The position numbers and the translations under genes are program-made. A stretch of DNA of 64,000 nucleotides from Oopsacas minuta (taxonomy: Eukaryota; Animalia; Porifera), in contig JAKMXF010000110.1 of assembly GCA_024704765.1 (NCBI GenBank), positions 248,001 through 312,000 on the forward strand. The letters are read 5' to 3'. Positions 98 to 15,636 of the stretch are shown piece by piece. The notes beneath the pieces are model-generated. The model ran no database searches. It was not told the origin of the DNA and saw only the letters and a list, made by a program, of their open reading frames with translations. Positions within the stretch are counted from its first letter, which is position 1. The number at the start of each line of letters is the position of its first letter.

Positions 98-1985
98 CTG
101 TATTTTAGTAAGAGCAGCACTAGAAGCTTCTCCAGCACCTGATTGTAGGCCCGTTATAGATGTAAATTGACTCTCCAATTCCTTCATACTATTCTCAGCT
201 TTCTGGTTAGCTGCAGAGCATTGAGTCTTAAGCTCATCTTGTGCATCCTTCAACTCTCTAAATTCACGCATCAGCTGCTCCAGCAGACCTAGAGAAATGA
301 TCTAAGGTTCATATTTTGTGGAAAATTGCAAACATCGCAGCTGGAATATAAGTAATCAATTCCAAATATAATTACAAGGATTTTGCGACAAATATAGTAA
401 TTCAAATCTATAAAGATATGAGAAACCGAATTCTAGATGATAGCTATAATATCTTTGAAGAAATCACAATAGTCTAATAAAGAAATATGTCACTATATAT
501 CAATGTAATGTAATCAGTATTAGACAGTATATATCCGTTATAATATATGGAATATGATACAGATACCGATTTGTATTAGAAACGTGAGTAATTAATGTCT
601 AGCCCTACATTAGTTACATATGTGTATATATACACGTATGTTGTCAATGAAAATAATTAAACAAGTGGAATAACGAAATGTACAACGAGAGTTCAACAGT
701 ATTTCTAACTTTTAATGTTCAAAGCAAGATAGAACACTCCTTGATTGGAGTTGGATCGGCTGCTGTTTGCTGTTATGCATGGGGATTGTTAGTATTAATT
801 GTGTTCTATGGACGTGTTATACAAGATAAATGCAGATGTAATAGAACTAGGACAAGGAGGAGAGAGAGGATAGAGAGGAGTAATGTTGAAAAGGCATCTC
901 TACCACCAAGTTATAATGAAATAATCAAATCTGATGAATTACCGAAATACGAAGAAATTATTATAACTCTTACAATGAGGGAATTAGATAATAAAATACA
1001 AGTTTGAATATTACCTGTATATTCTATATACGTATGTGTAAATATATAAATAATGAATATGTCAATAAATATGTACAGTAAACATTCCAATTATAAGTTA
1101 GAACCAAGTTTGAAATATCGAAACTATCGTTATAACGAGAGTTTACACCAGTTTTTACAATGTTAGAAATTGGAAAAGTCATTATGTTTAAGGTTAATTA
1201 ACGCTAAATTAAAGTACCTGCGTTTCCTTTGAGTCCACTCTCAATTCCTCCTATCTTACTCTGTAGAGCTAGATAGTCCATTAGATCTTGTACAGGGGTG
1301 GAACCTTCTCTTGCTCGCTCCAATATGTCATCTAGGGATCTGAATGTTTCTAGTTTACTCTCCATTTCTTGTAATTTGAAATCCAGCTCATCAGCACTCT
1401 TCATTACACCGACAACAGACCGACTATATGTAGCATACAATTATATAATTGTTTCTATACGGATTATGAAAATATCTCTCTAAGAAGTGGAAAATATACA
1501 AAAAATTTCAAATCATCCTTTTGTCGAATATACATTTAAGTTCTACCGAGTTCTACTGTACATTCTATAAGTAAAATTTCACTCATTTTCCGAAATTATC
1601 CGAACTATTCCCCTATATAAATCAATATCTACCTATGTGGCGTAGGTGTAGACCGTGTAACCACTACCTTATCCTCCTCACCCTCTACTACTTCTGAAGT
1701 TACAGCCTTCTCTTTCTTCCGTGTAGTCACTACTTTATCCTTCTCACCCTCTAATATTTCTGGAGTTACAGCCTTCTCTTTCTTCCGTGTAGTCACTACT
1801 TTATCCTTCTCACCCTCTACTACTTCTAGAGTTACAGGCTCCTCTTCCTTAACTTCTAGCTTATTCACGATCTCGTGTAGTATAGTATGGAGATGTTTGA
1901 AGTTTACTTCTCCACTGATAGGCTCCCCTAAACTCATATTGATTAGGAGGTGCATATCTTCAAAAGTCACAGTAGAAGCAGGCAT
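98..1985 (-). CDS. QRICH2/C16orf96 (DUF4795-family)-like coiled-coil protein, 5' part; gene continues beyond the left edge
   Basis: N-terminus MPASTVTFEDMHLLINMSLGEPISGEVNFKHLHTILHEIVNKL resembles the QRICH2/C16orf96 N-terminal motif (..L.DLAIGTP..GAVNF..LH.L). Phase-compatible GT-AG exons 1985-1633, ~1423-1218 and 288-98 encode coiled-coil segments. Confidence 0.7.
678..1007 (+). CDS. Small single-pass membrane protein with PPSY and LPKY (PY) motifs, nested antisense in intron 289-1217 of the QRICH2-like gene
   Basis: 109-aa ATG-initiated ORF: hydrophobic segment (LIGVGSAAVCCYAWGLLVLIVFY), basic juxtamembrane run (RCNRTRTRRRER), then PPSY and LPKY. Confidence 0.6.
   Translation: MYNESSTVFLTFNVQSKIEHSLIGVGSAAVCCYAWGLLVLIVFYGRVIQDKCRCNRTRTRRRERIERSNVEKASLPPSYNEIIKSDELPKYEEIIITLTMRELDNKIQV
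1660..1838 (-). repeat. 66-bp coding tandem repeat (~2.7 copies; 22-aa unit VT.E..EGEKDKVVTTRKKEKA)
   Basis: Near-identical 66-nt units visible in the sequence and in the ORF 1629-1985 translation. Confidence 0.9.
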
Positions 1986-2606: not shown

Positions 2607-5600
2607 TTAATCAGATTCAGTATCAGAATCTGAAGTCTCAATAACATCAACTTTTCCTTTCTTCCTCAATACTTGTTTCTTCCATTCTGGCATATTTTCG
2701 AATTTTCGTATTCTAGCTTCAAGTCTAGCTTCTTCTTTAGCCTGCTTCTTTTCATCCTGTTCACGTGAGGCAACTTTCTTCTCGATTAATTTTCGTTTCC
2801 AAAGAGGTACATCTTTCATCTGTTCTTCTTTAAGTCTCTCCCTCTCTTCCTTCTCCCGGATAGCTGCTATTCTCTTGTCCTCTCTGCTCTGAAGGAGCTG
2901 ACGTTTCCAAGGGGGAAGATACTCCACAGGATCTTAAATATGGAATTTTCCAGTAAAAAGAGACGACTGTAACTAGCAATTACTCGTTGATAATTTTATC
3001 ATTATACTGTTGGGGATAATATGTTTTCAGTCAAACGCGTTTTGACCGGAAACAGACTTTGATCCAAGTCCCAACATATCAAAATTTAACCAAGTTGAAT
3101 TAAAGATCCCGATCTGGGACCCATGGACACCTTGGTGGTCCACGGGCGATAAGGGGTGGACAGGATCTCAAAATTTGTATTACATTTTATTGGATCCACA
3201 AAATGTGTCAAAATTCGCTACATTAAGCGCTCTCACCTCCATCTAAATCAGTCTGTGGATTAATACCAGTCTGTACTCTAGCAAATCTAGAAGCATATCT
3301 CTCTTTCTGAGCTTTATATACAGCAGGATCTACTGGTTTCTGTTCTACAGGCTCTGTAGCTAGTCTCCTCTCTGCTAGTTTAGCTCCTAACTCTCCTACT
3401 GCTCTACCCTTCTGAGTCTGTGCTAGTCTGTTCTGTGAAGCTTGTGATACTTTACGTAATCTCTGCTTACTACCTCCTTGTTTTATCTCTGTTAATACGC
3501 TAAGGAAGTCTACTGTATCCTGCTTAGCTCGCTGATCAGGGTGATTTCCGCTCACCTTAGAGATTAAGATATCATCAGGGACGGTGTTTTGACGAATATG
3601 GTCCTCCTATATGCTTATTTGATATTTAACCATGGATGTTGGATTTCGTATATTTTATGTTACATACGTAGAAATCCCCTCTCCAACCAAGTGAGGAGTA
3701 CCTCAAAATGACCTAGAACAACATCCAAGCAGATAACTAAATTTACCATCCATGGTTAAATATCTAATAAGCATATATGGAGATCATTTTCGTCATAATA
3801 ACGGTTTCAAGAGGAAAGGGATTGAACAGTCACCTTTCTAAGATTCAAACCCTTTTTAATCTCAGAGAAAAGAGCCTGTTTCTGGTCGGGATTAGGATCA
3901 AATCTCTTCCTCAATTCATGAGCTGATATCTGTTCAGGAATTTCTATATTTATTTCTATACTATCATCTCCTGATGAGTTATATGTAAGCTCTGCCTCTA
4001 TAAGCTCAGGCGGTATATCAGGAGGGGGAGGAGGGATAAGAGTCCGTAGTTTTGTGAATTCTACAAATGGGTAAATATAAGAAAAGAAATACAGTACTGT
4101 GTTACTATACCTCCGCAAACGAGGTGCCAAAAAGCCGAAAATGCTACCCTCTTTCCCTGATTCTGCCCAATTCCCCGTATGTGTGGAGTTGCATTTGTAT
4201 GGGATTAGGAATTCGCTCAATACGTGCATATTTGACTCCGAAGTTCCCTGTTTGTGGAGGTTACACTGTACCCAAAGGTATTATTATATCAGAAAATAAA
4301 CATTTCCCAAATTTGGCCATACGGTTAAATCAATACCAACTCTGAATAAGCATTCATTAAATGTTACTTACTGCTTTTTATAGGCTTTGATTGCTTCTTG
4401 TCTACAGAAGTGACTGGGTTACTATCTTTGGTATTAACAATGACGTCATCAACATGAGTCATAGGTAAGTCAATACCAAGATTAAGAGCTTGTAGCTCTT
4501 TAAGAGCTATGTCTAGCTCCAGCTGTTGATCTAGTAGTGCTTTCTCTGTGTCCGCCAGAGCTCTGGATTGAGTTACAGGTATCTAGAATAATAGATTAAT
4601 TAGATAAATAATGACGTAATAAATATCTGTGGCTACAAGGTGATCAGAAGTTGGGTCATGTGACAGGTTGAGAAACTCGAAATAATCCATTGGGAGTTAA
4701 TACTATCAACACAAGTATATTGACCTGAGGCTGAGTAAGAGGAGGTTCTTCTACAACAAGATCAGCTAATATATCATCTTGTTGGACAGGTGGAGGTATA
4801 AATACAGGTTTGTCCTCTACAGGATCATCTAACTGTCTACGTCTAGGTCTTCTAACTACAGGAGGCATATTATCATCCTCTCCATCTTCCCAGATCTTCT
4901 TAGGGGGTGGAGGGGGAGGCTTGATTACGTCAGAAGTACGGTGCTCTTCAGGTAGGTCTAGTCTGTTGATTAGCTTCTTAATGCGACGTGCTACTGGCTT
5001 GTCTGGTTCTACTGGGTATGTGAATTCTGGGGGAGGAGAGGAAGCGATATGTTCTATAGCAGGTTCATCTAAATCTGATCCTAATTGGTAAATACACAAT
5101 AAAATGATCATGGTGTATGTAGGATACTATCAATGTAAGGTTGATTATTCGAACAAGTACTGTAGTATAGTCAACTCCGGTTATATCGAAGGAAATGTAC
5201 CGCAATAATCACTTCTATATAATCGACGGAATATTTATCTGTGTTCAATAAAACGGGAGTTGGCTGTAATAATTATCTCTAAAACTATACCTGAAGATAT
5301 ATCTTTGACTATTGGATTCATGACATTCTTAATTTTAGCATTATTAACTTGAACTAAAGATTGTAAACGCTTTGGAACTTGAGTGCCAGTTTCTCCTGAA
5401 TCTTCTAATTCATGAATCTAAAATGAATGTAATAAGAAGATTAATATAGCGAAACGGGGAACTTCTAGAAATGGGTGAAAAATGAATAAAGCAAATTACT
5501 AGTCCCATACAAATGAACCTCCACTAACGGGAATTTGGCAGAACGAAGTAAAAGGACCGCAAGGTAACATATTTTAGTGTTGACTTACTTCAAACTTTCG

Positions 5601-6820
5601 TATAGGTACAGGAGGCTGTAGACTCCCAATCTCAGATGAGGAAGGTATAGATTCTCTTCTAGAATATTCCTTCTGTCCTATAAATCCTAGCGTGTCTGTT
5701 CTTAATCTAGGCTGTTCTGACATAGCATGTCTACTCTCCATTTCTACTCCTTCCATAGCTCCATGTGTTGTCTGTCTAACCGTAAGAGCTTTAGCTCCCT
5801 GATGATGTTGTAATCGAGCTAGAGACTCACTCACCCTCTGGACCTCTGAGGTCATCTTCTCTCTGTCTCGTGTTAGAGATTCAAAGCATATTTGTAATTC
5901 ATCACATATCTCAGCCATACACTAAAAGGAATAATACAATCTGTAAGATAATTCTGAGTTTATATCAGAATATATTAATACAGTCAATTCCAGTTATATC
6001 GCAATACCAGCTTATATTGAAGTAATCATCACCTTCCTTGAGCTTCGATATAACGGGTAGTTGACTGTATTACTGTATCTTGTCATAATTCTAAACTATT
6101 TTGACAAGTGCCAATTTTTCAGGAAAATACAACTCCCTAATTGTAATTACTTTTTTAGAATGCACAATAAGGACGTGACATTGGACCATGGATCCTAGAG
6201 GGTGTAGACATTTTATACCGAGCAGTAATTCATCATCTTCTACAGAATCTTCACAAGAACTGATACTAGATATTTGAGGTATACCGTTAAGTACATATAG
6301 AAGCTTCTTACGTTTGTCTGTAACCTTAAACAATGTAATACTACTTCAAAATATTGTCTTGGTAACTGATTTCCTTATTTATTACCTGCAGCCATGTACC
6401 AGATAACATAAGTATTTTATGTGTAGTAGACCTACACATTAGATAACCATGTCTCTTTCCCCAATCCACGTGCTCTAAGAATTCACTACGAGTACTATAA
6501 GACCTCCACTCAGAGCAGTTAGGAATACTACCTAAGTAGATAACATTCCATTCCTTAGATCCAGTTGCTAGGGAAGGCTCCAATCGTCCCAATGGAGGGT
6601 AGCAGTCGGATGGGTCTCCATAATTAGTTCCCTCTTTCCAGTCTAGTTTCGGGAATCTCAGTTTAGGTTTAGGACGTAGAGGCGTGTCTTTAGATCTCTT
6701 CTTATTGATCATACGAAGGAAGTTGTGTTTACGGTTAGCAGCTCGTTCTGAAGCAGCTTCACTCTTACTACGTGCTCTATCATCTCTGCTACTACTGCTA
6801 GACATCTGGTTAGACTGCAT
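2607..6820 (-). CDS. CCM2-like PTB domain + proline-rich motifs + two WH2 domains + C-terminal PxWK(R/K)xL triple repeat (espin/phostensin-like)
   Basis: Phase-consistent exons 6820-6386, 6324-6151, 5921-5589, 5417-5291, 5080-4725, ~4582-4372, 4060-3834, 3555-3267 (or read-through to stop 3223), 2932-2607. The PTB part (VIYLGS..STRSEFLEHVDWGKR..HVLIVHSKKCMAEICDELQICF) parallels CCM2. WH2 motifs: ALFSEIKKGLNLRKV and VLTEIKQGGSKQRLRKV. Confidence 0.75.
3582..3805. mobile_element. MITE-C (long imperfect TIR containing TATTTAACCATGGATG); second copy ~11020-11215 in opposite orientation, partial copy ~17805-17885
   Basis: Inverted TGACGAA.ATGGTC..TATATGCTTATT..TATTTAACCATGGATG at both ends; internal CTCCTCACTTGGTTGG.GAGGGGATTT shared between copies. 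Confidence 0.7.
4092..4268. mobile_element. MITE-B copy in an intron of the PTB-WH2 gene
   Basis: Ends GTTTGTGGAGGTTACACTG-TA; core is the reverse complement of the 55635-55810 copy. Confidence 0.75.
5168..5266. mobile_element. MITE-A copy (intronic)
   Basis: TAGTCAACTCCGGTTATATCGA ... AACGGGAGTTGGCTG-TA. Confidence 0.75.
5981..6067. mobile_element. MITE-A copy (intronic)
   Basis: TA-CAGTCAATTCCAGTTATATCG ... CTTCGATATAACGGGTAGTTGACTG-TA. Confidence 0.8.
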
Positions 6821-7182: not shown

Positions 7183-7545
7183 TCACATTTGACTCTTCTT
7201 TTGCTCTAGAAGTTCTCTAAAATGCTCCCCGCTATCTTTCATTCCCTTCTCAAGTCTCACTTTATTAGCTTGCAGTGTCTCAATTTTCGTAGCAGCATTA
7301 GTTTTCTTGTCTACTAGCATTCTCTGTATTTCCTCTACAGGTTGTAGATAGAACATACGTCCGACGGATTCGTATACGTTAACATCAGCAGGTAGGGACT
7401 TCAGGTCATCTGCGGTTAATTCTGAATATGTAATTACTCTCTGTAGATTTTCTATCTGTGATTCAGCTATGTTAATTTTCTGTACAGATTCTAATACTTT
7501 AGATTGATGGTCTGCTAGAGCCTTGCGGATTTCTTGATCAGTCAT
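7183..7545 (-). CDS. PFDN1: Prefoldin subunit 1 (beta-type), intronless
   Basis: 120-aa ORF: coiled coil, VYESVGRMFYL beta-hairpin, coiled coil; typical of PFDN1. Confidence 0.92.
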   Translation of the reverse strand: MTDQEIRKALADHQSKVLESVQKINIAESQIENLQRVITYSELTADDLKSLPADVNVYESVGRMFYLQPVEEIQRMLVDKKTNAATKIETLQANKVRLEKGMKDSGEHFRELLEQKKSQM

Positions 7546-9346: not shown

Positions 9347-12300
9347 ATGAGTGTAGCTACTAGTAAAGGAGTAGACAAGTCTCCGATGGAGGATATTATT
9401 AATCTACCGTTTGATGCATTCGTAGAACATATACAAATTCATCATGCTCAGGTTCATAAGTTATTTTCATTGGCTCATCTGAAAGTATTACAGTTAGACC
9501 CAAATACACCATATAAGGAAGATAACATACATGAAACGTTTATCCGCTACTACGGAAATTTCTTCTACTTCAAGCATATTCAGTCATACCTGCAGGTACA
9601 TTGCTGTATTTACATAATTTTACTTAATTAACGGTCACCTTACGATAGCGACCCGTTATATAATTATTACGATACCTGTATTATTTCGGGATTCAATTCA
9701 TATCGTGGGAAAACTTCGATAATCCCGGCAAATTCTCATATCTTATTTCTGAATAATTTCTGGAGTATTAGGGGGAATAATTTGAAATAAAGGGATTTGA
9801 CAATGCATCTCCTGGGATTATTATTATTACTACAACCTAATTCTAGTCCCAAACTTGATCGTAATCCGAGATTCTACTGTGCCTGTAAAACAGCAATAAC
9901 TCGTAACTTATTTCAATCTTTTAGACATCAGCACAGAACAAGCTATGCAAACCACCTACTAAGGTATTAGCTGGGATAGACTTCTCCCAGTTCGATAACA
10001 TGGTGTTAGGGTTAAAGAAGGTATGTGCTAAGTTGGAACATATCCTCAAAAGTAAATTGAACAAGACAGAGGAGGAAATGGGAGAGAAAGCTCTACCTAG
10101 GGTTATCAAACTTAATCGTAAATATAATCTAAGTGATAAAGAGTCTCTAGCATTAATATTCACTACATGTATAGCTGTATGTCAAGAAGGAACTCCTAAC
10201 AAGTTAGTTCATAATATTTTGTAATTTACTTTAACCTCGAATAGTCGCCCCCTTGATAAAAACGACTTTCTCGCTGATGAGTCATAGTGTGTATTTTGTT
10301 ATATATTATTACTAACCGCTATGGTTTCTATAAGAGGTAATTCTGATACCCGAGTTTCCATTCATAACGTATCCTAAATATCAGGATATAAGACACGCGA
10401 TAAATATGTAATAATAAACTACAGTTAACTCCTGTTATATCGAATGGGAATCAAAACCGTCAAAGTAATACGAACACTGTTAATACGAAGTTCCGGATAA
10501 GGCGAACAGTATTTAACCTTCCATTGGTGTTCTTTCGTATTAACGAGGTTCCACTGTTTCATCAGTTATATCGAATGGGAAATTGGTTCGTCTCACTAAA
10601 TCAGGACACCACCATATACAAGTACCATTGTTCCCAGTTAGTTTATGTGTCACTGTAGACGAACCAGACGTCCCCAAAAACGAGGCATATACTCCCAACC
10701 TGAATCACGTCCTCGTCCCGAAGACGAAATCAAGCTTAAACTCTTCCTATTAAATCGTGGCCTCCCATTTTTGTTTCTACATTTATTTTATCAAACCAAT
10801 AGCTGGGCTATGGGGAGAAATCTATTGGACTACTTGCAGCCTTATCAATCTGCTCTATGCAAAGCTTGTGATATGACTACTACTGATTTCTTGCACTTCT
10901 TGGATCAAGATAGACCCATAATACAGCAAGGAATATTCCCAGAAATACAGACTAACTATACACTGAATTGTACACTTAATATGGATGAAGTTGTTTTAAA
11001 AGGTGAGTGTATTGTTATGACTTATGACGAAAATGGTCAACTATATGCTTATTATTTATTTAACCATGGATGGTGAATTTAGTTTACTGCTTGGATGTTG
11101 TTCTAGGTCATTTTGAGGCACTCCTCACTTGGTTGGGGAGGGGATTTTACGTATATAACATAAATAAACTAATCTACCATCCATGGTTAATATCTAATAA
11201 TAATATATGATACGTACTGAATTTAAATATATAGAATTCTATTACAGGTATTATCGGAGCACATTTGAGAACTTCTGAGTTTATGAAGTTAGAACAGACC
11301 TCTCTGGCAGAAATAATAGCAGTGGAGGAGGGTAACGAACAGTACAGAGATCTGTGTGCTCTCAGTAAGGGACTGGCCCCCTCACTGATGGGAGACAAGG
11401 ATCGTGTTCCTACAATTAGTGATAAAGATCTACCTGAGAAAATGGATATTGTATCAGATAAAGGGAGTCATACGTCAAGTGGTAGCAAATCTGCGGTAAT
11501 TATTTGATATATGAAATAATTTATATGTATAATATAGATACAGTGAAATGGTGAATAAGTTTTTTTGCATTCAATGTTGACTGGAATTGAAAAGTTCTCA
11601 GGGCGGAAATATTTCTATGAGATCGATTTTAGTTATCTCTTTCGTTTCTACCGACGAGAGTTAAATGTTTGTTAATTTGTATACTTCATTACTTCTGAAA
11701 TTAGTTTAATTCCATAAAAGGGCTTCCCTAATAGTCTAGTGGGGCAATTATCAATTACATCCTGTAATATATATTGTTTAACTCCAGACTGATAGAATTC
11801 CATTCTCTGACCTCTCAGAGCTACCTCCAGAACTTCTAGAGCTAGATCCAGATGACAATGACCTAGCTACTCTCCTCCGAAGAGAAAGACTGTTAGAGGA
11901 ACACAAGAAGAAGATGATAGAGAAAGCACGAACAGAAGGAGGAGAGGCTACAGAGGAGGTTAAAGATGCTCCTGAATTGTCAGATGATATTGTCTTGGAT
12001 ACTGGTTAGCTATGGACACTCTATTATAATCGTGTAATTTGTTATTAATTGAAAGAGCATTATGATTAATATACAGTAACTTCCAGAAAATTGTATTAAT
12101 TTTTTTGCACTACATTTCCAGGAGTTTCGCTTTCAACATGTCCCATTTGTGGAGATTAAAATCTGTATTGTAATTAATTTATAACCCTACTGCTAGGACC
12201 TACAAATAACCGTAATTGCTACGTTAGAGGTAAATAGCTATTTATCTATTTTTCACTCTTTAGATAAACTAACACCCTACAAGACAGACCTAGAGTATTT

Positions 12301-15300
12301 AGATGATAATTTCCAGCTGATTAGCTTAATGCTTAAAATTAAAGGTTTAGAAAAGAGAATAGAACAAGAAGCATTGTATGATGAAAACTTTAAGGATGTA
12401 AGAACTCACAGACAGAAGAGAGAATCTGAGTACAAAACTAAGGTATATTCACAGAAAGGAATGTTACCTCTAAATCCTCTATTAGTTGGAAACTTGGTTC
12501 AGCTCTACCGCCTGCATCGAGTTTATAAATTATAGTACCTAGTGATTTATCTTCACAGACCTCCTTACACGAAAATTATAATATTTCGATTTTCGTCGCA
12601 GAGTTCTTTAAATTATTCTATGAAAAGGCCACTTTGTATTATGATTACGTCATAATATAATAAGATAATGATAATGAAATGCAGCCTGCCCGCATATTAA
12701 GCTAGGCCTCGTGTGGAGCTGAGCCAAATTTCTCATTGATATGGCCTCTTTATTTGTACACAAGTACTTCAATGTTATATCGTTACAGGTTTGAGATGGG
12801 ACGAATTCCTATAGCTATTAATATTTCTGTATTCAGGTACAATCAAGAAAATGTGAGAAACGTTTAGAACTAACCAGACAGACTGGATCATGGATTCCCA
12901 GACTTGAGAGATTAGTAATTAGCAGAGGTCTGTGTCCTTTTGAGAAGAACCTTGTACTCACTCTTATAGGAAGTATTATACAGCCTAATAAGATTAACAA
13001 CTGTGGAGATATGAATCCATATGCGACAAGTTCAAGTACAAGTTTCTCAGTTGGAGAATTACTCAGATTGTTTTGTACAAGGTAAGTACAATATTCTATA
13101 CACGTGAGGCCACTTTTGACCTATGTTCCCCATAGCTTAACTGAACAGATAAAACATCGTACTTTCTTCTACAAGAATGCTAAGCTAGTGAGAGAGGGCA
13201 TGATAGTAGTACATGACGTAGGTATTACTGGAGACCCTTCTTCTGCTAAAGTAGAGGTGGATAGAAGAATGCTGGACTTCTCTGTGGGACTAGACACTGA
13301 GTTTTCTGAGGTGAGAAACTTCTAAATATGACAAAATTTTGTATTATTATTTGAGTTGAAATAACTTGTATTTATAGGTTGTTGAAGGATCTCATCTCTA
13401 CTTTCCTAAGACAAAATTTAACAATGTAATATTGAGTGGAGAACAGAAGGAACTAATTCTCAGTACAGTCAGTAACTTTGATACTTATCGGCGGTGTAGG
13501 AAGAAGCTTGGATTAGATGACATCATTACATATGGAGCAGGTCTGGTATTATTGTTTCATGGACCTCCTGGTACTGGTAAAACTATGATGGCTAATGCGT
13601 TAGCTAACAGGCTTGAAAGGAAGGTAAGTTATCCAATGTCTGGATTCGACTTCGAGTTTTCCGGATCCATACTTGAAATTAATCGTGACCAATATATTTC
13701 AATATTTTATCAAGGCACAACCCTTAGGTATTATTGATTAACTTTCCTTCTCTTGGATCTATGTCAGCTGGAGAGAATTTTAAGTTTATCTTCAGAGAAG
13801 CTAAGATAAATGATGCTATATTATTCTTTGATGAGTGTGAAGGGATATTTGAGTCACGTGAGAAAGGAGGTCATAACATTAACTTGTTGCTAACAGAAAT
13901 AGGTACCTTCATAATTGTAATACAGTATTAGTAAACTCCCGTTATATCGAATTCTGACAAATATGGTACCAACCTGTGAAAGAAACATATTCCATCGGTT
14001 ATATTAGGATCTGCGGTATATGTCGAAATAATTCTCGCATTTCCTTGAGCTATTTCTGAAATATCCCCTTTTCTAGAGAGACATGACGGATTAATGATAA
14101 TGGCTACTAACAGACCGTATGATTTGGATGAAGCTATGCATCGTAGAATTACTATTGCTTTGGAATTTCCTAAACCTGATCATATCCTAAGGAAAGAGAT
14201 TTGGGGATCTCATATACCTGCTTCTATGAAGCTAGCTGATGATGTGGATCTTTCGGAATTAGCACTAAGGTAGAGAGATTTATTGAGCGATATATCTTTC
14301 CAAATGTTTCGTTTATCCATGATTCACTTTATCTAGATTTGAGTTAACAGGTGGATTCATAAAAAACTCTATTCTCTCAGCTCTGTCTATTGCAGTATCA
14401 AGAGAGGGAGATACACCTTATGTGTGTCAGGATGATCTATTGAAAGGAGCTAGTCTACAGCTCAGAGGTAGACTTAGGATGAAGGACTTTGATCGCAGAG
14501 TTATTCCTTCAGTCGGACTTGATGAGGTTATATCAATTATTCATATTATTTTATGATTCATTAAGACTTATTTTTGGTCAAACCACCATTTCTATATTCT
14601 TACATTTGAACGCAGCTTGTATATGCAGTGACAAACTGTAACCTCCACAAACGGGGGCCTTTGGAAACGGAGTGAAAACTTCCTAGTGCTATACAAATGA
14701 ACCTCCACAAACTTGAAATATCGCAGAAACGTGGGTAGCACTTTAGGCCTCCAGGCACACCCGTTTGTAGAGGTTGCACTGTATCTGTGTTTTTACGACC
14801 CCTACCACGAGCGATTTCGGAAATGGGGTGTCATAAATACCAGGTTTTACTGGTATACCCATTACTTACAGGTTGTGGTGAATGATAATATTCTGAGCTC
14901 ATTGAAAGAGATAGTACAGTATGAGAAAGCAAGAGCTGTATTATTCGGACAATGGGGATTCGGTAAAACAGCCTCTAGAGGACTAGCAGTGCTAATGCAT
15001 GGTAAACCTGGTACTGGTAAATCACATTCAGCAGAAGCTATTGGATACGAAGTAGGAAAACCTCTAAAAGTTGTAAACTGTGGTGAGCTATTAAGTAAAT
15101 GGGTAGGAGAGAGCAGTAAAAATATTGACTCCTTATTTGAAGAATCCAAGAACATGGACGCTATTCTCTTATTCGATGATTGTGATGGTTTATTTGGCAG
15201 TAGAACATCAATGGGATCATCTACAGACCGATATGCAAATGTTGATGTAGGAGTATTGTTGTATCATATAGAGAGGTTCCCAGGTATTGTAATTATGACT

Positions 15301-15636
15301 ACAAACGTAATTGAGAACCTTGATAAAGCGTTTTACAGACGGTTCCGTTATATGTTACATTTTGAGACACCGAATCAATCTGACAGAGCTAAACTATGGA
15401 AATTATTAATTCCTAAGGAAACGCCTGTTAAAGATAAAATAGACTTCAATGCTCTTAGTGCACATGAAATGACTGGTGGTTCTATTAAGAATTGTATTTT
15501 CAGAGCGGCTGCTAAGGCAGCGTTACGTTCTGTGCCTGAGAGAATGATTACTACAGATGATCTTATCAAAGCTGCAGTAGCTGAGCTTAATAAAGCTAAC
15601 AGGAATTTAGGTGATATCAAGAATATATACTCATGA
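9347..15636 (+). CDS. Tandem (double) AAA+ ATPase with N-terminal helical region; Afp15/Pvc15-like (RYAN-motif) family; 13 exons
   Basis: Phase-consistent exons 9347-9595, 9925-10202, 10659-11002, 11248-11495, 11788-12004, 12264-12442, 12837-13081, 13136-13310, 13378-13623, 13728-13902, 14077-14269, 14337-14526, 14872-15636. D1: GPPGTGKT / FFDECE / LDEAMHRR. D2: GKPGTGKS / SKWVGES / LFDDCD / TDRYANVDV / LDKAFYRR. Confidence 0.88.

Follow-up and report, generated by a model that had tools for sequence, protein, structure and literature searches.

Here, we describe a gene of the glass sponge Oopsacas minuta that lies within a 64,000-nucleotide stretch of assembly GCA_024704765.1 (contig JAKMXF010000110.1, positions 248,001 to 312,000 of the forward strand; hereafter the window, in whose coordinates all positions are given). 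The gene occupies positions 2607-6820 on the minus strand, and its nine exons encode an 835-residue protein in which a conserved globular head is followed by proline tracts, two WH2-like motifs and a helical tail that carries three PxWK(R/K)xL motifs. Reasoning from the sequence, we propose, with a probability of roughly 55%, that this protein is an actin-regulatory scaffold specific to glass sponges, built as a lineage-specific combination of known actin modules. The architecture is unusual, and every actin part of it is of a known kind. The gene is real and is expressed in O. minuta, and the protein is already present in NCBI as an unnamed product.

Gene structure and expression

An in-phase splice model places exons 1 to 3 at 6820-6386, 6324-6151 and 5921-5589, exons 4 to 6 at 5417-5291, 5080-4725 and 4582-4372, and exons 7 to 9 at 4060-3834, 3555-3237 and 2932-2607, with the stop codon at 2609-2607. 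All nine exons have canonical AG/GT borders and join into a single reading frame. The model was compared with a sequencing run (X4) whose kind is labelled unknown, but that behaves as RNA because its depth sits on exons only and its contigs carry CT..AC joints. Contigs from this run cover the exons, and nothing else in the gene, at high depth, and contain the joints 2932/3237, 3555/3834, 4582/4725, 5080/5291, 5417/5589 and 6324/6386, and the remaining two junctions, 4060/4372 and 5921/6151, are bridged by loose contig ends. Therefore, all eight junctions of the gene model are supported. The exons of the head are connected junction by junction to those of the WH2-like motifs and the tail, the full transcript being contained in no single contig. 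In addition, the public annotation of the same contig has a gene on the identical span with an 835-residue product.

An earlier note on this DNA, made from the letters alone, had proposed that these exons splice in phase into one protein, and the splice model, the X4 junctions and the NCBI product all agree with this; the RNA-like contigs assign the PTB-like and WH2 exons to one gene. The order of modules that it gave, with a globular head followed by proline tracts, two WH2 motifs and three PxWK repeats, is also correct, as KPPPPPPK, IPPPPPDIPP, two WH2-pattern motifs and three PxWK(R/K)xL motifs are all present in the product. One junction had been misplaced. The note had exon 8 end at a donor at 3267, a joint absent from those listed above, whereas X4 joins 3237 to 2932. 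With the donor at 3237 (GGTGAG), the protein gains the decapeptide GINPQTDLDG, a stretch conserved in relatives, and is consequently 835 residues long.

Relatives and sequence constraint

A word-index search with exon 1 identified six relatives, all in European Nucleotide Archive (ENA) assemblies, and a word-index search with a profile of the tail returned orthologues only; both used a length filter of 0.55-1.75x, under which only proteins of single-exon-like length are visible. The six related loci match the gene in exon structure and in intron phases (0,0,0,1,0,1,0,1). Five of them have complete open products of 825-844 residues, and the contig of the sixth stops inside exon 8. An exhaustive phmmer search, which covered exon 1, returned a single match from 1.84 billion cluster representatives, this being one of the six relatives, and found no kin of exon 1 beyond this group. 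The head thus appears to lack sequence-detectable kin elsewhere and, as far as the searches reach, the gene has so far the look of one confined to glass-sponge-like assemblies. Full-text literature searches found no paper on a CCM2 plus WH2 or PTB plus WH2 architecture. The earlier note's remark that no protein of this architecture was known is consistent with the lack of an outside relative of exon 1, and holds as far as that search extends.

Relative to the window, synonymous divergence (dS) is approximately 1 in the comparison with the closest relative and has reached saturation in most of the other comparisons. Nonsynonymous divergence (dN) is 0.06-0.18 for the head, 0.05-0.15 for the block containing the second WH2-like motif and 0.07-0.13 for the tail. 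Where it could be computed, dN/dS is 0.04-0.08, with values of 0.06 for the head (against L002), 0.04 for the second WH2-like motif and its linker, and 0.05-0.08 for the tail, pointing to strong constraint on all three blocks. The central part of the protein is under far looser constraint, except for short conserved islands: PDKPVARRIKK..RLDLPEE, PPV.RRPRRRQLDDP and the helix-like LLDQQLELDIALKELQALNLG.

The C-terminal tail

The last 107 residues (positions 2610-2930, residues 729-835) form a helical tail that ends in an acidic stretch rich in serine and threonine. Its three motifs, PPWKRQLL (2915-2892), PLWKRKLI (2807-2784) and PEWKKQVL (2690-2667), are conserved throughout the relatives, whereas among 20,000 shuffled sequences the regular expression for PxWK was matched once in a fraction of 6e-4 and never twice. 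The Pfam family Phostensin_N (PF13916) matches all six tails over profile positions 7-30 of 86, scoring 16.5 bits for the window protein and 24.0, 23.0, 20.7, 20.5 and 17.6 bits for orthologues, against a cutoff of 23; which motif matches best varies among orthologues, all three doing so at least once. This gives substance to the suggestion, made in the earlier note, that the PxWK motif is related to that of phostensin and taperin. A further likeness is to the villin headpiece (PF02209), whose final helix is matched by FENMPEWKKQVLRKKG, the last motif with the preceding FEN, in six of six orthologues, at 10-18 bits for a cutoff of 27. The match covers profile positions 17-32 of 36; the first half of the fold is absent, and a long helix is modelled in its place.

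AlphaFold2 models the tail with a predicted local distance difference test (pLDDT) score of 84, as helices at tail residues 7-37, 43-78 and 82-91, each of which starts from a PxW. Because the predicted template modelling (pTM) score is low, the tail is more likely a rod than a globule. The modelled helix lengths would place the motif sites approximately 5 nm apart and span approximately 11 nm end to end, a distance close to the spacing of filaments in parallel bundles. In an Atlas feature search with the tail, the third named cluster was "Espin (Fragment)" at 0.78, which we take as a lead only.

Given that two orthologues score at or just over the gathering score for Phostensin_N, we considered whether the protein might be a targeting subunit of the phostensin/taperin type that brings protein phosphatase 1 (PP1) to actin. 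What it has in common with taperin and phostensin is the PxWK(R/K)xLL motif only, a matched part of approximately 22 residues that is here C-terminal and present in three copies. The RVxF (KISF-type) PP1-docking motif, sought as [RK]x0-1[VI]x[FW], is conserved nowhere in the orthologue set, and Pfam searches of the exon pieces and tails gave no match to the Phostensin C-terminal family. With the docking motif absent, we rejected a role as a PP1 regulator, which we regard as highly improbable. N-terminal fragments of taperin (residues 1-170 and 1-260) that include its phostensin-like region (residues 15-107) bundle F-actin (PMC12139522).

WH2-like motifs and proline tracts

The WH2 pattern consists of an amphipathic helix followed by an LKKV-type motif, hh..I..G..L[KR]K[VT]. 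It occurs twice in all seven sequences, whereas shuffled sequences contained it once in a fraction of 6e-4 and twice in none of 20,000. The first motif, DQKQALFSEIKKGLNLRK (3834-3887, residues 604-621), was found by Pfam and by regular expression; in full it reads DQKQALFSEIKKGLNLRKV, intron 7 preceding its last residue, V622, whose codon (3555-3553) opens exon 8. For the peptide that spans this junction, the WH2 family PF02205 was the sole Pfam match, at 14.9 bits and an E value of 0.022, below the cutoff of 23.1. The second motif, DFLSVLTEIKQGGSKQRLRKV (3448-3510, residues 637-657), was found by regular expression and has a linker before its LRKV that is three residues longer. The tandem WH2 arrangement proposed earlier can therefore be upheld at the level of motifs, with PF02205 below threshold for the first. 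An Atlas language-model feature search with exon 8 returned WH2-bearing clusters at 0.80 and 0.76, one of them a fragment cluster named WHAMM; these too are leads only.

Approximately 15 residues beyond the second motif is a near-invariant amphipathic stretch, AVGELGAKLAERRLATE (3352-3402, residues 673-689), in which 16 of 17 columns are invariant across the seven sequences. It may resemble the connector (C) helix of the verprolin homology, connector and acidic (VCA) regions of WASP/WAVE proteins, including WAVE and N-WASP. Together with the proline tracts, the two WH2-like motifs and the WHAMM-named cluster at 0.80, this raises the prospect of a WASP-family-like nucleation-promoting factor, in which the stretch would serve as a connector-like helix and the protein would activate the Arp2/3 complex. 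However, the acidic-tryptophan motif of such factors ([DE][DE]W or [DE][DE]x0-1W[DE]) is absent from every orthologue, and a further 150 or so conserved residues follow where a WASP-family C-terminus would be. Moreover, a profile of exon 8 found no WASP or WAVE chain in the PDB, and the Atlas score is below 0.9. Lacking the acidic-tryptophan motif, an Arp2/3 activator was rejected as an unlikely identity for this protein, and we give it little credence.

Both proline tracts were read from the sequence and lie upstream of the WH2-like motifs. The first, KPPPPPPK (4902-4919, residues 411-416), is inside the conserved block PDKPVARRIKK..RLDLPEE...PPV.RRPRRRQLDDP, and a run of five to seven prolines is kept in four of the six relatives. 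The second, LIPPPPPDIPPEL (4020-4034, residues 555-559), is PPPPP in five of six and PQPPP in L001. Between the two is a conserved amphipathic, helix-like stretch, TEKALLDQQLELDIALKELQALNLGIDLP (4463-4549, residues 487-515), that is found in all seven sequences.

The N-terminal head

The head comprises a globular, PTB-like region encoded by exons 1-3 (5856-6556 including introns, residues 89-225), which is the best-conserved block of the protein, preceded by a basic stretch, RKHNFLRMINKKRSKDTPLRPKPKLRFPKL (6644-6733, residues 30-59), with 82-84% mean column identity across relatives and a possible role in membrane or nuclear targeting. We consider that the head is probably a PTB domain, and rate a specific origin from CCM2 lower. 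When a profile of residues 61-145 built from the seven species was compared with the PDB, the PTB construct of human CCM2 (malcavernin, 4wj7) ranked third of 177,635 entries, at an E value of 0.45 and 13.6 bits. The aligned stretch (6443-6586, residues 79-126) corresponds to residues 4-52 of the construct, running from construct residue 4, at the N-terminal edge of the crystallised domain, through the YLG strand and the next helix, so that strand 1 and helix 1 appear in the right order. In Smith-Waterman alignments of the head with vertebrate CCM2 exon fragments, scores were 45-53 as compared with 26 +/- 4.5 for shuffles, approximately five standard deviations higher, and all seven orthologues gave p values of 0.0005-0.004. 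These fragments, some of which may derive from contigs of humans or other mammals, were obtained with the 49-residue 4wj7 query, and two of them (P0012 and P0018) were used for alignment. AlphaFold2 modelled exon 1 alone with a pLDDT of 46, too low for the model to be usable, and predicted only a helix at residues 111-123, which falls where helix 1 of a PTB domain would be. By eye, exons 2 and 3 also carry what we take to be Dab-like PTB patterns (I-S-x-C-x-D and C-H-V-h...A..I......F), a lead and not a test.

The opposing possibility is that the head is not a PTB domain at all, that the likeness to CCM2 is due to chance, and that the protein binds actin in the manner of espin or taperin and has an N-terminal domain, specific to the lineage, of some other fold or function. 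The entries that neighbour 4wj7 in the ranking, such as an HIV matrix protein and an endoglucanase, are clearly spurious. No PTB or PID family was found by Pfam on the exon pieces, on two junction-spanning 39-residue peptides of the head or on the record for the full product. Among phmmer and profile comparisons of exons 1, 2, 3, 8 and 9 with the PDB, the weak CCM2 match from exon 1 was the sole result. Likewise, no usable match came from an Atlas search with exon 1, and the exhaustive phmmer search with exon 1 reached neither CCM2 nor any other PTB protein. The silence of Pfam says little, as the PTB domain of CCM2 is itself not known to fall within the Pfam PID family. With the collinear alignment, the pairwise scores and the modelled helix on the other side, we regard a head of unrelated fold as a possibility of secondary rank. 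The CCM2-type PTB of the earlier note is weakly supported: the third rank of 4wj7 at an E value of 0.45 and pairwise p values near 1e-3 favor it, whereas the exon 2 and exon 3 profiles and Pfam do not.

Whatever the origin of its head, the protein is not a usual member of the CCM2 family, because it is without the harmonin-homology domain: CCM2_C gave no match on any exon piece at E values up to 10, nor on the record for the 835-residue product. Compared with CCM2, the likeness is confined to a weak collinear resemblance to the first PTB strand and helix, and an actin module replaces the C-terminal half. The introns of vertebrate CCM2 just before YLGQ and after DNAK are both lacking in the sponge gene. 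We view with some skepticism the more specific scenario in which the head is a true CCM2-derived PTB and a glass-sponge adaptor of the CCM2 lineage swapped its harmonin-homology domain for two WH2 motifs and a triple PxWK rod. If it were true, the protein would give a syncytial animal a direct connection from NPxY/F-bearing partners, such as KRIT1-like proteins or beta-integrin tails, to its actin bundles, a link that other animals are believed to make only indirectly. O. minuta has three beta integrins (PMC10280926).

Comparison with known actin regulators

A close parallel in layout is espin. The bundling module of this monomeric protein is a helical C-terminal peptide of 116 residues that has an actin site at either end, glutamate clusters and charged stretches in between, and a WH2 motif and proline tracts in front (PMC2132824, PMC3953818). 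The small isoforms of espin, Drosophila forked and the sponge protein have in common the order of proline tracts, then WH2, then a helical, charged C-terminus of approximately 110 residues with candidate actin sites at its ends. The sponge protein differs from espin in having two WH2-like motifs as opposed to one, three PxWK motifs, and no ankyrin repeats, such as those of the large espin isoforms; no Ank family matched any exon piece or the annotated product. A second parallel is EPS8, which combines an N-terminal PTB domain and a C-terminal actin capping and bundling region in one polypeptide and acts at the tips of microvilli and stereocilia. EPS8 differs in having an SH3 domain and another kind of helical actin-binding region that has neither WH2 nor PxWK motifs.

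Several results weigh against the protein being the actin scaffold that we propose. No Pfam match on the nine exon pieces was significant, the protein encoded in the window scores below the cutoff for every family, and the record for the annotated 835-residue product lists none. The second WH2-like motif has no Pfam or PDB profile match. Since only positions 7-30 of 86 are matched, the Phostensin_N likeness is one of motif and not of domain. The likeness to espin is one of layout, judged against the published description (PMC2132824), plus the Atlas lead, there being no Pfam model of the espin module. At the head, an E value of 0.45 makes the database-wide CCM2 match not significant, and profiles of exon 2 and exon 3 found no PTB domain in the PDB.

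Proposed function

Taken with the conservation of the motifs and their order, we nevertheless favor a scaffold that would work as follows, every binding activity here being a prediction. The N-terminal head, probably a diverged CCM2-like PTB domain, would most likely place the protein on a membrane-associated partner, perhaps helped by the basic stretch. The two polyproline tracts could serve as binding sites for profilin-actin or for SH3 proteins, and the tandem WH2-type motifs could hold actin monomers, such that together they might gather monomers or hold the barbed ends of filaments. The three-helix charged rod, each helix of which opens with PxWK(R/K)xL, would offer several filament-binding sites along or between filaments, in the manner of the espin bundling module with its two sites. 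Wherever its head directs it, the protein would then attach to, cross-link or elongate parallel actin bundles, in effect as an elongation and bundling factor of the espin kind that carries its own targeting module. The coupling of receptors to actin, nucleation and the binding of NPxY partners are likewise predicted activities.

In glass sponges, which are syncytial, several core metazoan genes are missing, and little is known of the way in which these animals shape and anchor actin structures, collar microvilli among them. A conserved protein in which a putative docking head is joined to motifs of the monomer-binding and filament-binding kinds is a concrete candidate. The triple PxWK rod may also represent a compact natural case of a short filament-binding motif. 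PxWK-type motifs are also found in phostensin and taperin, in the villin headpiece and probably in espin. For taperin, the structural basis of the filament-binding motif is unsolved (PMC12139522). Were the head truly derived from CCM2, the gene would be informative about how the CCM adaptor arose; if not, it would be one more lineage-specific shuffle of known actin modules.

Neighboring genes and repeats

Directly upstream of the gene, on the same strand, is a single-exon gene for a prefoldin subunit (7183-7545, minus strand; Prefoldin_2, E value 1e-17). Five of the six related assemblies show this same arrangement, and in L003 the prefoldin gene is on the opposite strand, approximately 3 kb upstream. 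Downstream is an open reading frame at 1629-1985 (minus strand) in which a unit of the form VVTTRKKEKAVT.E..EGE.DK occurs as a threefold repeat, and genes of the DUF4795 type are found downstream in related loci.

Intron 7 contains a foldback element (3582-3803) with 68-nucleotide arms that are 81% complementary. A DNA run is 10-30 times deeper over 3632-3785 than over the flanks, and the element is therefore most simply described as a multi-copy repeat resembling a miniature inverted-repeat transposable element. Further high-copy bins are present in introns at 5480-5633 and 5942-6095. Finally, a neighboring gene at 1910-8199 of L007, corresponding to approximately 9347-15636 of the window, is annotated as encoding a double AAA+ protein of 1119 residues that also has a WHD domain.

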